DNA of 63,749 bases, filler included, from Pelomyxa schiedti (taxonomy: Eukaryota > Protista > Evosea), in NCBI GenBank assembly GCA_020536535.1. It is 6 parts of 6 records of this genome, joined end to end, with 100 filler letters (N's around TTAATTAATTAA, not from the genome) between each part and the next. Parts side by side here need not be neighbours in the genome. Positions count along the whole stretch, not along the records: positions 1 to 31,388 come from JAHLWZ010000999.1; 5 more parts are not named here. One strand, given 5' to 3'. The notes under the pieces were generated by a model. It worked only from the letters and a program-made list of their open reading frames with translations. It did not search any database and was not told the origin of the DNA. Of this stretch, positions 139 to 31,388 are shown one piece after another. The position numbers were made by a program, and so were the translations under genes. Every line of letters starts with the position of its first letter. Within the stretch, counting starts at the first letter, position 1.

Positions 139-2951
139 ACCTGGAAGTCTGAAACATGATGAACCAAACTTCTGTAAATATCCATAGCACTGTTAGCCTC
201 TGATATCGGTTGGACAAGGGAAAATAGTTCCTTGTCTGAGGGGATCAGAGTTTCAAGGGAGGCCACAAATCTTGATTCTGGCCCATATTCAAGGGCAATG
301 ACCAAGTCTGCTAATCTGCTCACAAATGAATCGGTGTCAGGGGACTGTATGGGTGCTGTGGTGGCACCCGAGTTCCGCGCATCTTTTTCCATTTAGTTCA
401 ATTATAGTAAATCTCTCCATACTTGGTATTTCTTCTGATGATGAGAGTATATCTTCTCTGGTGCTGGAGAAGATATCAGGCCCTGAAATAATCTTGAAGC
501 ACGTAAAAACATCACAACCATTGGGATGTTTCTGCTGAAAATGAGTTTTTAACTATGTAAACGTAGCAACAACATCCGACTTCCTGATTTAAAAAAGCAT
601 CGACATCTCGGCTTGTTGAAAACCTATGCTCACTCAAAAAGGCAAATATCCCTATTGGTGATCAATCGTTTTCCTCTCAGATATAAAATTGTTACCAGGG
701 ATGTTCCTCTGTTTTTGTAGTCTGAAAAAGTGTAAACACGATTCAAGCAGTTTCTGTTCATTAGAGATGGAAGTCACCCGGCAGACAACTTTGGCCAAAA
801 CAGAGTTATATTGTTTAAAAATTGAGCATTGCTATTAACCCATGATGCTATCGGGATTCTCCGAGCAGCAATTGTTGCCGTCTTCAATACCATAGTAGAT
901 GAAGTCAAAGCTTTCATGTGGATCCCCACATCTTATTGTTCCCATATGGGTCTCTAAAAGTATGGCACCATTCAATGGTGCATCTTTATGGTATATCGCC
1001 AAAGAAAACTGCAAGTCTACAATTGAAAGTTGATTCCAGAAAAAGATGCTACTAATTTACTTGAGTCACAGTGGTAGCCTGTTTGTTCAAAGACATAAAA
1101 CTGGAGCGGGGACCAGAACTTGGCCAAGTCTAGAGCAACTCGTTTTTCAAATTCACCTTCAAAGATATTTTCCCTATGTCTACATGAAGAGTGAAGTACG
1201 GAGAGTGCCTGAGCAAAGGTGAGTGTGAATGGAATCACAATTCTATTGAGATAACAACTTACAGATGGGTGGTTGGCTATACTTTGGCACATAGCTGATA
1301 GGGCACAAGGGCAAGGATCAAGTACGATTAGTGTGCTTTGGTTTTCGCCATCAAATGAGACCTCAATTAAGCCAGTCTTATTCAACATCATTCCATAAGT
1401 GAAGACTGTATTAAAATCTGAAGATGTCAACAATGCATATGAAACTATTTTACACTACCTTGGGGGTTTGTTTTCTTGGATATTTTGTATACTAGCCCAT
1501 TTTCATTGCGGCATGTCATGTTCTGTGGGTGTGACAAGGTGATAGTAAACTCCTCGAGAAATGATTGTTTCATATTATCAATGCATTCATGGGTACGGTA
1601 CCTAAAGTAAAATTGAGGATTTGAATTCCATATCTTAGGTAACCACTGTTTCAAGATCTGACTGAAGGTAGCAGTCAGACATTCATGAGAGGTGCTCCCT
1701 CTGCTTGTTGACTGAAATACTCTTAAAAGCACAGTAAACAACAAACTTGGTTCAATATCACTTACTGGGACAAAAACTCTGAACAAATTGCAACTGGACC
1801 TCGTATAAAGCTGGCAACCTGGATTTTTTGAGTGGTACTTAGAGATGCCTACTTCCTACTTTCTCCAGGTTTTGATTGCTCCTCTTTAGTGGGCTTTCAT
1901 TTGGTATGTGCTTCTGTAAAATCGCGTAGGCTTCACTAAATGGGACACTAGATACCTAAGTATAATGTAATGGTATTTTTAGGAGAGATGCAGCATACAA
2001 GTTGTGAGGCATCAAAGGTTTTAAAGTGAGTTACAATCTCTGGGAGGAGTAGTTTATTGCATCCCGTAAACACTATAGTAATGCCCAACTTATTTAATAA
2101 AGCAATAAGTTCCTTTAGCACTTTGAATAGCTGTGTAACTTTGCCATATGCTTGCTTTTTATAGAAAGAGTTTAATAAAGAATAGGGAGAAAAGAGGGGT
2201 TAACTTCCATCATCTGGTCAATGTTTTCAAAATAGAGTGTCAAAGGTATGGTTTGGCCATCTTTTAGTCTGCTTTGTAAGTTTTCCTTGACTCTAGCGCT
2301 ATTCTCCATTTCAGTTTTGCTCATGGGAATCCCAATATTAAAGATAGATGTTGAGCTTTCAATTTGTCAAGATAAGCTAGTATTTACCCAAAAAAGTATA
2401 CATACTTCGCTAGTATGATTTTCCCAAGAATAAAAAGGATCCATTGCTCAAAATCCTCCTCTGGTGTTTTGAGGTATGAGTATTCACAGTTATGTAGATT
2501 TTAGTTACTTATTTTTACCCTGGATGACAGCTACCCCGTTGGCAAACGTCTGAGATAAAGAACAGCATAACCTATTGCTCTTCTTATGTATGAAGTCTAT
2601 TACAGTCCTCTTTCCGCAGCCTGAATTTAAAGGTATAGGCACAGTAAAAAGAAAGTCATGCAAACTACCTGGAGCCCCAAAGAGTGTAATAACATAGCCT
2701 GCCGTGCTTTGCGGGTTGTTCACCAGTTCTATTGTACGTGAGAGCACATCCGCCGGATATTCACGAAGCATCATGCTGGAAGTGGTGGAAGTAATGCTTG
2801 GAGATGTTTCGAGCGCGGCCTCGCGCTGAACATTGGAAGCGGAGACAGTATCGCCGGGAGTCGATAAGGCCGCGCCACTGGGTGCATCTGCTCCTATTCG
2901 TGCGCTTGTAAGTCTACGACGAGACCGAGGCCCACGTCCGGCTCGGCGCAT
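96..2951 (-). CDS. Multi-exon P-loop NTPase-domain protein (AAA+/STAND-like N-terminal half, uncharacterised C-terminal half)
   Basis: Removing the 48-nt GT-AG intron at 2668-2621 gives VITLFGAPGCGKRT (Walker A-like). A later exon gives TLYFENID (Walker B-like). Junctions checked near 2400, 2180 and 1040 keep the frame using GT..AG introns. The 3' end is uncertain. Confidence 0.6.
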
Positions 2952-4700
2952 GGTCACCGATGAACAGCCAATATTAAGAGGGAGTAAAAGACAAAGGAAA
3001 AAAAATTATTTAACCGATCCCTAGAGATTCGGTTAACTTAGAGATCCCGAAAATTTAGTTCGTTCTAGAACGAGCATGCGGAGCAAAAAGCGCCTAAGGT
3101 TTTTTATTAAAATGCCCCAGCGATGGCCCGGAACGGCCAATCACAGACGCAAGTGCTCGACCGGCGGTGACGTAGTGGTTGTGGTCTGAGCTGGCGGTCC
3201 AGCCCTCTAGTGGTGTCTTGGCTTACGAGTCCGCTTGTGGTTCCTGGGGATTGCCTCACTCCGAGTGAGGTTAGAATGACTTGGTGGTTCTAAAGCTATA
3301 CTGTTAGGCTCCTGGTTATCATATTGTCACTCTGGCCTTTGTATAGTGTTTAATGCAGGAAAAGCGCTGGTCTTCGTTTCAAACAACAAAAAAATCATTC
3401 TAATAAACAAAGCGTCAGCCGACGCTATGGCATTGGTGATTTATGGTGTGACAGTGTTGGTGATGCGCATTGCGGTGTTTGGTTGTTGACTTCTGTTCCG
3501 GTATTGTTCTCTTTGCTTTTTTTATTCTATGGTCACTTATTTATTGACTTTTTTCCCCTTACTTTGTATTAACAGTTTGTTTTTTAAATTTCGTTTTGTT
3601 ATGTAGTTGGATTTCTTTGTCTTTACCCTAACTTTGTCTTTATTTCGTTTAGTGTACTTAAGTTTTTGGCACAGCGGTACGTTTCCATTTGTGTTTTAAG
3701 TCTCCCTCACTCCAACATAGGGCCTCCATGCAGTGACTCAGTCCAACTTCAATGGACCAAGCCGGAACTACATGTATTTTCTCCGCTTTTTCTTAGTACC
3801 GGGCCCGGTACTCCATGCACTCATCTCCCCTTTGGGTAAGTAATGTTGAATAGGTGGTGGACTGGCCTGGCTGAGATGACAGCCTGTCACGAAAGTGGGG
3901 TAAGTCCCTCCTTTTTAATCATCACTCAAACATAATAGGTACCCCCAGACTGATAGGCAGGCCTGGGAGAATATGTGCAGCTCTGACCAACTCTCATGCA
4001 TGGTATGTGGCTCCTTTTTTTCTTTTTTCCAGTAATATATTAATCAGGTGGGACTGGCTGGCTTCGGAGCTGAGGTCTATCATCAAGGTAATTCCCTCTC
4101 CATTTTTATCATCACCCCACTCAACAATAACAAGTTAACAGATGCCAGGAGCTTCCCTTCATCCATTCCCCTATGCCCACACTACCTGAAGTCGAAAATT
4201 GACTTCAGGTGAAAAAAAAAAAATCATTTACTTCCAGAAAGTACTTGGGCTTTTTTTGTTTTAGCTCCACTCCAGGAGCCAGTGTTTTTTTTTTTTCGGA
4301 CTGCAACCCAGAGGAGAATGTAAGGTGGGAACAGGAAATGTTGGCTGATAAACCAAAACAGCTCTTTAGCACCACCCCTGATGCAATCCCTCACCATTCT
4401 TTTTTTTATTATGTTTGCCCTCCTTCTGGAAGCATCAAGCTTATGCTTGCTGCACTTTGTCTACATTGTGTGACACATTCTCTGGTTCTGTATCCAGGAT
4501 TGTGTGCCCCCTTTTCATTAAAACAAGCCCAGAGTTTAAAAAATTACTTGACCTTGATTTTTAGTTTCTTGTTTCCTTTGAAAAGATGTAACCTGACACA
4601 CAACTTTCACTGCAATCAGCAAGTTTAAGGAAAAATGGTATGTGAGGTTTACTTAGCACACATGGCTCAAAAGGTGGTGACTCATTTAAACACTGTAACA

Positions 4701-4832
4701 GACAATATATCAAAGCTTTCAGCCACACAAGAGTTATCATTATTGAATCTGGGGCACTGTGAATTTAAATTCATAATACCCCAATATCAGCAATGATAAC
4801 TCCTGTGTGGCTGAAAGCTTTGATATATTGTC
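4701..4832. repeat. 132-bp imperfect palindrome (66-bp arms, no spacer)
   Basis: Arms 4701-4766 and 4767-4832 are reverse complements with 9 mismatches; the outer 40 bp have only 1. Confidence 0.9.
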
Positions 4833-4847
4833 CATTGCATACAGTAC

Positions 4848-4981
4848 AAAATGTGAAGGGATAGTTGTTTGAATCTAGGTTTAGTACAGAGATAGCACTT
4901 TTGTACACACTCATCCAGAAGTGTACAAAAGCGCTATCTCTGTACTAAACCTAGATTCAAACAACTATCCCTTCACATTTT
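4848..4981. repeat. Hairpin with 61-bp arms and 12-nt loop
   Basis: 4848-4908 and 4921-4981 are reverse complements with one mismatch; loop actcatccagaa. Confidence 0.92.
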
Positions 4982-5206
4982 TGGTTGTACACATTAGTGC
5001 TGCTTCACAATAATGTACTAGAGAGGGTAAGTCAACATATAAAAAGGAAATTCTAAAAGAATAAGGTGTTGCTTGGTTACTGTGGGATAGGCAGACAAAT
5101 AGTGGATTGCCTCAAGTGCACAAGGGCAAGGATTATATACAATCAAGACATCTTCATTATCCCCATCAAAGGTAACATTTATCAGTCCTGATTTATTCAG
5201 CTTCAT
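4921..5206 (-). pseudogene. Decayed paralogue fragment of the P-loop NTPase gene
   Basis: MKLNKSGLINVTFDGDNEDVLIVYNPCPCAL aligns with MLNKTGLIEVSFDGENQSTLIVLDPCPCAL (ORF 1017-1433). Further on, after stops, KG*LFESRFSTEIAL resembles RENIFEGEFEKRVAL. Confidence 0.7.
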
Positions 5207-5410
5207 AACTCATGACTTCCTTGATGTAGAGAAAATATTTATTCTTTTGTTAATTATTCATCTTGGGATTTGGTGGGAAAAAGCGCTTGTTTGCTCAGCC
5301 AGGGATTCTGGGTCAAATCTAACGAATAGCTCGAATTCCTGGGGTAGCCCAAATTTCTAACCTCGGTTTTGTGCCACAAAAAGCAAGAAAAAAATAAAGA
5401 AAAGTTTTCG

Positions 5411-6325
5411 ATGGCGAGCCGGGTGATCAACGTCGTTGTGTACTCAGACATAATTTGACCTTGGTGTTACGTCGGGGAAGTTGTTACTTTTGGGCTCAGC
5501 TTTTGTGGTATGTAACTCGAAAATAGGCTCGCTTGAAAAAAGCAATTGAAGTTTTCAAGCTAGAGCGCCCTGATGTGGGCATTAACGTGGAATGGGCCAC
5601 TTTTTTATTGCAACCCTCAATTCCTTCTCCTTCTATTGATTGGAAATTGGCCTATGGGTACTTTTTTTTCCCTGAAGTTCTCACTATTCAACAATTATTT
5701 TGGAGGCTCTATGCTGGTTGGACAAGATATGAGCAACACCCTGCCTATAAACAAGATGGACTTCCATTTGCAAATTGGCCCTACGTTCCAAATACAGTAT
5801 CCAAATTGGAGTTTTTCTTTCACCTGACCTGCTACATTTATATATTAACAGGTAAATGCTCACCGTTTAATCTACCACCTCCCAAAAGAAAAGAAGAATA
5901 AAGCCGTTTCACTATTGTTCTTCAAAAACTATGAAGTGCGTCCCTGTTTTGCATCAATACACGCCTAAGTTATGATACAGACAGGTGAAAATATTGGTGA
6001 AATAGAGACTCTGGTTCGTGTTGCTTCAGAACTAGGTGAGGATCCTGCAGCAACAAGAAACTATCTGCAATCTTCAGCCGATCGCGATACCGTCATGCAA
6101 CTGGCCTCAAATGCAACATCCCGAGGTATCGCTCCCATTTCCTTTCCCATCACCATCCCAGAACATATATATATACCTTGGAATCATACAGCAATCCTAA
6201 CCACCTACCACCCAAAAGGTGTTGATGGGGTTCCCCATTTTGTAATTTCCTCCCGAACCACAGTTGAATTCTCCGGAGCGCAGAATCCACAGGCACTAGT
6301 GAGCTCCTTCTACAAGGTTCTGTGA
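5411..6325 (+). CDS. DsbA-like/FrnE-family thioredoxin-fold oxidoreductase, predicted selenoprotein (UxxC)
   Basis: ATG at 5411 gives MASRVINVVVYSDII-TGA(5456-58)-PWCYVGE. Introns 5480-5526, 5797-5851, 5936-5980, 6126-6218 (and possibly 5658-5705) give ARLKKAI...PNTVNAHRL...NYETGENIGEIETL...GVDGVPHFVI...FSGAQ, the FrnE hallmark motifs. Confidence 0.92.
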
Positions 6326-6371
6326 TTTTCCACCCCAAACACCACCAGCACACCCAATCAAAATCGCCGGT

Positions 6372-6450
6372 CCCATAACCCAGTGTGATGGGTGTTGGCT
6401 TCCAAGTCGCACCAGACAATCCAACATCCTGATGTTGTATGGGTTGTGGG
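6372..6450 (+). promoter_or_regulatory. Eukaryotic type II SECIS element in the 3' UTR
   Basis: Helix I 6372-6382/6440-6450 (11 bp); core GUGAU 6385-89 / UGAU 6430-33; helix II 6390-6401/6418-6429 (12 positions, one C-U mismatch); unpaired CCAA; mini-helix GUC/GAC with a 6-nt loop. Confidence 0.88.
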
Positions 6451-6607
6451 GCTGAGGCTGAGACTGGTGTTTGGTGATGGCAGGGGAGGAACTTCACCTC
6501 AATGTTAATTCAACACAGGGACATTTCTATCTACTTCAAATTTGAAGCGTTCGCCTGCCTAAAAGACAGGAACAAACTTCTCAATAAATTCGGGTACGTA
6601 GGGAGCG

Positions 6608-11741
<5,134 letters not shown>

Positions 11742-29380: not shown

Positions 29381-31388
29381 ATGACTGCCGATTCACCAGA
29401 AGCATCGACTGGCGCACCACCCCCACCACCACCAAACTACCTGCCACCCAACTGCAAGTGGTGCAACAAGAAATTACTGTCGAAAGCGAAAATCCGCCCG
29501 CCCGGTTCTGCTCACGCCATGTGGTCACACTGTGTGCTCCGACTGCTGGTCCGGCATACAGAGCCACGACGCGCGGTCGTGCCCAATCTGCAGGGTCTCA
29601 GTGACACATGGCACCCCCAACAGTCGAATTGCTTCGTTGCTCCAGGCCATGGAGGACGCGGGATGTGCAGTTCCGGGAGATCATTCCTCAGGCAGCTCAG
29701 AAGACCCTCTTATGTGCGCAGAGTGCTCAACCAACGAGGCCACTGTGTGGTGCCAGAAGGAGGAAATTGCGTTGTGTGCTCAGTGTGACACTGTGATTCA
29801 CCAGCTGAAAATAAACAAAACGCACGAGAGGGTCCCGATCGGGCCTTCAATGAAGCCAAAGAGGAGTTGGGCGGAACCCAAGTGCCCAGTGCACCCTAAC
29901 AAGGACCTTGACATTTGGTGTGAGGATGACAAAGTATGTATTTCACTTATTCTCTCCGAAATCCACTATTATTAATAATATTATTTTAAAGACACTTTGC
30001 TGCCTTCTTTGCAAGGAAGAGAGCCACAAAGGGCACAACGTCTCATTCCGTGATGATGCACATAGCACCGCGGTGAAGGCAATGCTCGAATCATATTCCA
30101 ACATAAAGGCAATCGTTCAAGCAGGTTCCTCCAAGGTTGAGGAAGAGCAAAAAGCACAAGACCAGTTGAATGATGACGCAAAAAGAACGAGAGAGTACAT
30201 TGAAACCGAGTTTGTCACCTTTCATCAGGCACTGGACCAACAAAAGGCACATCTCCTTTCGCAACGGGCGAAGCACAAGAAACGTTGCCATGGCCCTCGC
30301 CAAATCCACAGGTCCTTTTTCTTTACAAATCACTCAATCGAAATAACAACAAAATAAGAGACAAAAGTGGCTGAGATGTACTACTACCAGCAAATAAGTG
30401 CTGCAATTGAGCATCTTCAAAAATGTGATGACACCTTTGCAGTTTTGCAGACGCTCTCCCTGCTCAAAAAAGAGGAAAATGTCAGTGGTGGCCTTGTCAG
30501 TGACTTATTTGGAGAGCAACCACCATCCATTACAACGGCATTGGCATTGGGAAGTTTGACCTTTGTGGGCCAGTATGCATCTCTGATAGGCCAAACAAAT
30601 GTCGCGGTTCGGGTCTGTCTTCCAGTTTCCTGTGTTGGATGTGCAATGCACTGTTACAGACATGGAAACCACAATCACATGGGAGGAGAGAGAGCCCCTT
30701 TTAGACAACCCAGGACTAAAATATTCTTACCAGGGGGTGCTACTGCTGAATGATGTACTTGTCCAAAGTTGGGTCACCCCACACAAATATTATGTTCTAC
30801 ACTTGCCTCCAGGTATCACATATGTGGTGAAAGTGAGAGGACTTTATGGGAATGAAAAGCGTGTGAGACAACAGCCACACAATGTTTCTGCGTGGTTTGA
30901 GAGGTCTTTCACCACTCATCCCCGCCAAGTATTCTCAAGGCCGGGCAGATACACTTTCACCATTCCAGCAGCGTGACATCAATAAACACAATTGCTATGG
31001 AGGCGGTGGTGCTGGTGGCTCATGGGGCAAAGGAAAACAACAAAGAGGAACCGATGGAGGCGATTCAATGATTGAAGGTTGTCAGAGCCCGTGGTGGCAA
31101 GGCTGGAAGCCCAGCGCGCGGCGATCGCGAGGGTGGCCGTGGAACAACTGCCAACGGCGGAAAGGGGTCGCATCCCTAACAACGGCGCTCAAAGCGCACG
31201 TGCCAGTGGTGGTGGCGCCGGTGCCAATTGTGGAGAGCGGGTTGTAGGCGCGGCGAGAAGGCCATATCACTGTGATTTCGAATCACACCCAGAGTGGGTT
31301 CCAAGCTGTTCCCAAAGGGTGGTCTCAAAATGTGAAAAAACACTACCCAAGTGGAGAAGGTGGAGGTAAAATCACAATGGGCTCGATG
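29381..31388 (+). pseudogene. TRIM-like gene (RING, two B-boxes, coiled coil, FN3-like, Gly-rich domain) with many frameshifts: pseudogene or sequence error
   Basis: CKWC lies in one frame and PVLLTPCGHTVCSDC..CPIC in another; B-boxes CAEC..VWC..LCAQCD..H and CPVH..LDIWCEDD..CCLLC..H; further shifts near 30270, 30600, 30970, 31000, 31080 and 31170. Confidence 0.7.

Follow-up and report, generated by a model that had tools for sequence, protein, structure and literature searches.

A putative selenocysteine-containing DsbA/FrnE-like oxidoreductase gene in the anaerobic archamoeba Pelomyxa schiedti

Introduction

DsbA-like selenoproteins (Sec-DsbA) have been documented in Micromonas, Ciona, and Branchiostoma (PMC2874816), and they are among the most widely distributed selenoproteins of algae (PMC7539508). 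They are also found in Nematostella, Lottia, and Capitella (PMC2874816, PMC3473315, PMC7539508). The first-pass annotation of the gene described here placed Sec-containing DsbA/FrnE proteins in bacteria and some algae; the literature agrees and adds marine invertebrates, where these proteins are widespread (PMC3473315). In the eukaryotic genes, the exon that carries the selenocysteine (Sec) codon is typically mis-annotated as UTR. Deinococcus radiodurans FrnE (PDB 5cnw/5cp1), a disulfide oxidoreductase of the DsbA family located in the cytoplasm, is the best solved relative.

Among Amoebozoa the Sec trait is scattered (PMC4561486), and it is present in anaerobic metamonads (PMC10703272, PMC1805757). 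Sec use is known from Dictyostelium and Acanthamoeba and from the anaerobic Spironucleus, Monocercomonoides, and Paratrimastix (PMC2375036, PMC4561486, PMC10703272). In the literature searched we found no earlier report of a selenoprotein from Archamoebae and no paper that links Pelomyxa or Mastigamoeba with selenoproteins; the genome papers of Pelomyxa and Mastigamoeba never mention selenium. To our knowledge, Entamoeba is without Sec.

Here we analyze a stretch of 63,749 nucleotides of Pelomyxa schiedti DNA from assembly GCA_020536535.1 (the window, six joined parts with filler; all positions count along it), of which positions 1 to 31,388 come from contig JAHLWZ010000999.1. The host had been described as an apparently anaerobic amoeba, and P. 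schiedti is indeed an anaerobic archamoeba (Amoebozoa, Archamoebae, Pelomyxidae). We consider it highly likely that the contig carries a nuclear P. schiedti gene for a cytosolic DsbA/FrnE-like oxidoreductase with Sec as the N-terminal active-site residue (U-P-W-C).

The P. schiedti gene shares with the eukaryotic DsbA-like selenoproteins a DSBA domain, Sec or TGA in place of the first Cys of the CxxC motif, and a SECIS in the 3′UTR. The SECIS of Ciona DsbA is form II, and the SECIS-like element of the P. schiedti gene is form 2. Set beside the algal and animal genes by their published descriptions rather than their sequences, the P. schiedti gene differs in its host, an anaerobic archamoeba, and in its GUGA SECIS core. 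With the bacterial DsbA/FrnE-like selenoproteins (PMC1088965, PMC2398784) it shares the signature S/G-D-x-x-U-P-W-C-Y-V-G and a length of about 200-215 aa. The bacterial genes, in contrast, are mostly intron-free continuous ORFs; in bacteria the SECIS directly follows the UGA and SelB is the factor used, whereas the P. schiedti gene has five introns and a eukaryote-type 3′ SECIS. D. radiodurans FrnE has Cys in the active site where the P. schiedti gene has TGA, and it is 260 aa long with a C-terminal extension that is absent from the 208-aa Pelomyxa protein. In the type II SECIS elements of Dictyostelium discoideum (PMC2375036), a U-U mismatch adjoins the core and the apical bulge has unpaired A's. 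The elements of Pelomyxa resemble those of this amoebozoan in having a U.U beside the G.A tandem and a mini-stem. None of the five Dictyostelium selenoproteins (SPS2, SelK, Sep15, MSP, and a deiodinase-like protein) is a DsbA.

Gene structure and reading frame

The gene starts with an ATG at 5411-5413 (+) and has an in-frame TGA at codon 16 (5456-5458), the proposed Sec codon; its translated N-terminus reads M-A-S-R-V-I-N-V-V-V-Y-S-D-I-I-[TGA]-P-W-C-Y-V-G-E. We joined the exons across GT-AG introns by reading frame and homology. The spliced CDS has 627 nt in six exons, separated by five GT-AG introns of 45-93 nt, and encodes 208 residues, close to the length of about 210 aa first proposed. All features lie on the plus strand.

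Exon 1 (5411-5479) has 23 codons and contains the ATG, the beta-1 strand, and the active site U-P-W-C-Y-V-G-E. Intron 1 (5480-5526; 47 nt, GT..AG, phase 0) ends at an acceptor that is also used by the public gene model, P0001. Exon 2 (5527-5657) is identical to P0001 and is followed by intron 2 (5658-5705; 48 nt, phase 2). Exons 3 (5706-5796) and 4 (5852-5935) match P0001 as well; introns 3 (5797-5851; 55 nt) and 4 (5936-5980; 45 nt) are both in phase 0. Exon 5 (5981-6125) falls within the Pfam DSBA match, and intron 5 (6126-6218; 93 nt) is in phase 1. Exon 6 (6219-6325) encodes the G-V-P cis-Pro loop and S-G-A-Q, and its stop codon, a second TGA (6323-6325), ends the protein at the same residue as its homologs.

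Apart from the codon-16 TGA, the 208 codons contain no premature stop or frameshift, and all 10 splice sites are intact. No in-frame ATG follows that TGA until about 150 codons further on, which leaves recoding as the only route to the conserved protein body. The first-pass annotation held that ordinary gene callers truncate the gene, and this is the case: the mechanical ORF list breaks at 5458, and the public model is without exon 1.

Family membership

By its sequence, the predicted protein is a member of the DsbA/FrnE-like thiol-disulfide oxidoreductase family, in the FrnE-like branch, as had been proposed. Exons 2-6 (residues 114-298 of P0001) match Pfam DSBA (PF01323) with 55.6 bits (E = 7.5e-15, cut-off 25.6); single exons give only a sub-threshold DSBA match. 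Among solved structures, D. radiodurans FrnE (5cnw, E = 7e-11) is the closest; the alignment with it extends over the helical insertion, the cis-Pro loop with G-V-P, and S-G-A-Q.

The claim that the in-frame TGA sits at the first Cys of the FrnE motif holds in an alignment with Cys-form homologs of 30-34% identity, where residues 16-19, [TGA]-P-W-C, fall opposite the C-P-W-C or C-P-F-C motifs of P0005, P0007, and P0008. The motifs G-V-D-G-V-P-H-F and S-G-A-Q are aligned and invariant. With these hallmarks kept and no other stop or frameshift, we agree with the earlier judgment that this is not a decayed gene.

A profile search returned thousands of matches to "DsbA family oxidoreductase", most of them nameless. 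The best 120 named matches are bacterial DsbA oxidoreductases (26-34% identity), with no named eukaryotic relative among them. A word-indexed search with the exon 2-3 ORF as query gave no match. We also considered the Rcas_1661 family thioredoxin-like (seleno)lipoprotein (NCBIfam NF041057); the protein scores 19.6 bits against a cut-off of 190 and is not a member.

The protein begins directly at the beta-1 strand, like bacterial FrnE-like proteins, and has no signal peptide; on these grounds we predict that it is cytosolic. Its family membership points to a probable redox function.

Relatives with the same in-frame TGA

Two truncated matches of an exhaustive HMMER search led to the DNA of two relatives that have the same TGA. 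The first is L002, a Logan contig of 903 nt (run SRR23919873) with 57% identity to the window protein. It reads V-Y-S-D-V-I-[TGA]-P-W-C-Y-V-G-E-A-R and continues through the rest of the protein. L002 is a cDNA from which four of the five introns have already been removed, and the exon-1 sequence is joined directly to exon 2 at the same junction (E|A-R-L). It keeps one 107-nt GT-AG intron (201-307) at the position of intron 2 of the window gene and is thus a partially processed transcript. No ATG precedes the TGA, so the contig is 5′-truncated; its first 12 nt resemble what we take to be the tail of a template-switch oligo. This one cDNA holds both the TGA and a SECIS.

Runs SRR23919866-SRR23919877 are modified Smart-seq2 single-cell transcriptomes of P. 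schiedti (PMC10579272). Since L002 comes from one of them, it is most likely an expressed P. schiedti paralog with the TGA in its mRNA, although it may derive from a co-cultured eukaryote. We found no transcript of the window gene's own copy; the cDNA seen is that of L002. At least two diverged copies of the putative Sec-DsbA gene, the window gene and L002, are linked to P. schiedti data.

The second relative was recovered as one sequence from two sources, a 283-kb ENA metagenome contig (L003; ERZ21831265 ctg81688l, gene at 3422-4264, SECIS at 4288-4354) and a Logan run (L004). It comes from an AT-richer eukaryote and encodes a 212-aa protein with 53% identity to the window protein. Like the window gene it begins M-A-S, has its TGA at codon 16, and keeps the 15 residues before it. 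Its five introns are shorter (36-50 nt) and agree with those of the window gene in all positions and phases, including the intron-1 junction and intron 2. Genes near it on the contig include UQ_con, EMP70, and a protein kinase.

The TGA is invariant in the three genes. Around it, synonymous differences occur in Ser and Asp codons on the upstream side and in Val, Gly, and Glu codons on the downstream side, which indicates that both flanks are translated and under selection.

The public gene model

The exhaustive HMMER search with the C-terminal piece also recovered P0001, a 298-aa protein annotated on JAHLWZ010000999.1 as "DsbA family protein [Pelomyxa schiedti]". Residues 114-298 of P0001 are identical to our exons 2-6, and this annotation is independent of our model. 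The public model bypasses the TGA exon. Its first 113 residues come from exons in 3815-5225 (+), spliced to 5527, and because exon 1 is skipped it is without the CxxC motif. The first 113 residues match no Pfam family, and DSBA is the sole match on record for the product.

If the TGA were a genuine stop, the real protein would be the 298-aa public model, or a product of a downstream start without the active site. The existence of P0001, which ends with the same exons 2-6, speaks for this explanation, but we regard it as very unlikely. The added N-terminal part belongs to no known Pfam family, its last exon overlaps a diverged duplicated repeat fragment, and the upstream stretch concerned also contains palindromic repeats. 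Such a protein would also lack the motif that defines its family. The protein encoded by exon 1, on the other hand, is conserved with synonymous changes in two relatives, and the L002 cDNA links the exon-1 sequence straight to exon 2. The N-terminal part of P0001 looks like a gene-caller artefact, and the public annotation of the gene is wrong.

SECIS-like element

The first-pass annotation stated that a SECIS follows the gene, and we found a form-2 SECIS-like stem-loop in the 3′UTR at 6366-6458 (+), supported by the minimum free energy fold, a scanner, and an architecture shared with the relatives. The end first assigned to the feature, 6450, falls inside this stem-loop. The element starts about 40 nt past the stop codon, and its core lies about 60 nt past it. 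Helix 1 pairs 6366-6382 with 6440-6458 (14-17 bp). The 5′ core G-U-G-A (6385-6388) and the 3′ core U-G-A-U (6430-6433) lie in an internal loop. Helix 2, formed by 6390-6398 and 6421-6429, has 9 bp and is lengthened by two U-A pairs. The apical part has an unpaired C-C-A-A (6402-6405) and a 3-bp mini-stem (6406-6408 with 6415-6417). The 3′UTR folds with a minimum free energy of -43.7 kcal/mol, z = -3.2 relative to shuffles. The core is GUGA, not AUGA. Its distance to the AA, 14-15 nt, is toward the upper limit of what is usual.

The 3′UTRs of L002 and L003 fold independently into the same layout. All three genes have RUGAN, 38-40 nt, and UGAU in a stem-loop that lies 32-67 nt after the stop. 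Alignments of the three elements with MAFFT and RNAalifold were too poor for a consensus, as were those of four elements from the sister clade described below, and a core-anchored comparison was used in their place. It identified compensatory changes at seven of the nine helix-2 positions among the three genes.

A SECISearch-style scanner picks out the elements of the window gene, L002, and L003. By chance it gives 0.32 matches per dinucleotide-shuffled window (both strands), and none of 60 shuffles produced a match as strong as the one observed. The strict scanner found 0 matches in 633 kb of metagenomic DNA. A second, weaker match in the window, at 30852-30899 (+), has a helix 2 of 8 bp and a helix 1 of 10 bp and lies in coding-like sequence; since about 0.3 matches are expected by chance, it is probably fortuitous. 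A relaxed version of the scanner gave further matches at 10285 and 12156. With about 0.012 matches expected per UTR, the relaxed version is too unspecific for the 120 metagenomic loci considered below, and so we left it out of the evidence.

The Rfam model SECIS_1 (RF00031) did not report the window element even at E <= 10, whether it was run on the window piece or on the 3′UTR alone, and it did not report the L002 element at that threshold either. The AUGA-type element of L003 was matched over its full length with 25.8 bits (E = 0.005), where the gathering score is 35. We assume that the model fails on the GUGA-type elements of the window gene and L002 because it is biased toward animals. This non-recognition is the main weakness of the case.

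The three elements also bear on whether the TGA is an error. The gene could be a pseudogene, or a Cys codon (TGT or TGC) could have been misread in assembly or amplification or have mutated to TGA. The genome was assembled from single-cell, whole-genome-amplified DNA (PMC8887013), and TGA is one substitution away from either Cys codon. We give this explanation very little credence, because the same TGA occurs in two independent sequences of 53-57% identity from other data sets, because the remaining codons and splice sites are intact, and because a structured SECIS is maintained by compensatory changes.

A further explanation accepts recoding of the UGA, not as Sec but through near-cognate readthrough (as Trp or Cys) or a lineage-wide reassignment. 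In its favor, the case for Sec machinery in P. schiedti is an inferential one. Plain readthrough, however, needs no SECIS, and a SECIS-type structure is present in all three 3′UTRs. A general reassignment is opposed by the second TGA, which ends the gene exactly where its homologs end, so that UGA still acts as a stop. We judge non-Sec recoding to be highly improbable and retain Sec as the preferred reading of codon 16.

Relationship to other Sec-DsbA genes

We searched metagenomic DNA for the pattern D-x-x-TGA-P-W-C-Y-V-G and found it on at least 120 contigs (L005-L124; from JGI, ENA, and others). A metagenome scan by peptide patterns returned no relative. The pattern loci are full-length DsbA/FrnE-like genes, and in most of them the ORF runs on uninterrupted for about 190-210 codons past the TGA. 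All can be aligned with the Pelomyxa protein over a stretch that spans the TGA, with 20-46% identity. The genes with continuous ORFs are probably bacterial. The loci are consistent with the DsbA-like selenoproteins described in marine metagenomes (PMC1088965, PMC2398784).

A quick maximum likelihood tree places the three intron-bearing genes together in one clade (SH-aLRT 99). This clade is sister to the metagenomic Sec forms L041, L029, L039, and L010 with a support of 89, a placement that comes with a long-branch warning. The 3′ regions of these four loci have in common GGAAUGAC (G-G-A-A-U-G-A-C), a helix of 6-12 bp, and (C/U)-G-A-A, and are consistent with eukaryote-type SECIS elements; Rfam reported nothing in the four loci. 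This suggests that they are intron-less eukaryotic, perhaps algal, Sec-DsbA genes, and their sister position suggests that the Pelomyxa genes belong to a eukaryotic Sec-DsbA lineage.

P. schiedti has three prokaryotic endosymbionts (PMC10579272) and Sec-DsbA is common in prokaryotes, as the mostly intron-less genes on at least 120 metagenomic contigs illustrate, but an origin from a bacterial or archaeal endosymbiont or contaminant has almost no probability given five spliceosomal introns, a eukaryote-type 3′ SECIS, and a eukaryote-specific tubulin chaperone gene that starts about 150 nt further along the contig.

Proposed use of selenocysteine in Pelomyxa

We propose that the P. schiedti mRNA carries a UGA at codon 16 and that the form-2 SECIS in its 3′UTR would recruit SBP2, eEFSec, and Sec-tRNA. 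The codon-16 UGA would be read as Sec, and this residue would be the nucleophile of U-P-W-C. The second UGA would terminate translation.

We infer Sec insertion at the UGA and the presence of Sec machinery from sequence. A working Sec pathway, which the first-pass annotation had taken the gene to imply, is strongly suggested because three diverged genes share the TGA and the SECIS, and one of the three was detected as mRNA in a P. schiedti run. The genes suggest that the Pelomyxa lineage still uses selenocysteine. ARAGORN found no tRNA, and hence no tRNA-Sec, on the 31-kb contig.

It is also likely, with somewhat less confidence than we place in the gene itself, that Archamoebae are not uniformly Sec-less and that the obligately anaerobic, methanogen-hosting P. 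schiedti decodes UGA as Sec and has kept two or more diverged Sec-DsbA genes. Their products would be the first reported selenoproteins of Archamoebae. Entamoeba belongs to the same clade, and its absence of Sec would then be a later loss. The patchy eukaryotic map of Sec use would gain an archamoeba that lives without oxygen.

Very probably the gene is a mis-annotated representative of a selenoprotein family that was already known. Sec-DsbA proteins and the use of Sec by amoebozoans and anaerobic protists have been described before, and the Pelomyxa gene thus adds to a known family; it represents neither a new mechanism nor a new selenoprotein family. The analysis corrects a public gene model, in which a 298-aa "DsbA family protein" is annotated without its own active site. 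The conserved TGA and SECIS may serve as a handle for the rest of the Pelomyxa selenoproteome and its Sec machinery, and may help to date when Sec was lost on the line toward Entamoeba.

Neighboring sequence

Two adjacent palindromic elements (4694-4839 and 4848-4981) lie about 430-720 nt upstream of the DsbA ATG. In one, the arms are 73 nt long, 84% complementary, and not separated by a spacer; in the other they are 61 nt long, 98% complementary, and 12 nt apart. Both may represent foldback or MITE-like repeats. Rfam miRNA and sRNA matches at 4850-4980 were rejected as hairpin false positives on the palindromic repeat.

A coding-like segment beside the DsbA gene, at 5021-5206 (-), has 53% identity over 45 aa (E = 1e-16) to one at 1020-1433 (-) and looks like a duplicated fragment. 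The copy at 1020-1433 sits within a minus-strand gene of 707 aa.

Downstream, a gene for tubulin-specific chaperone D starts at 6608 (+), about 150 nt past the SECIS, and encodes 1205 aa with TBCD ARM/HEAT domains. The intergenic spacer between the two genes is very short and contains a possible AATAAA at 6583-6588.
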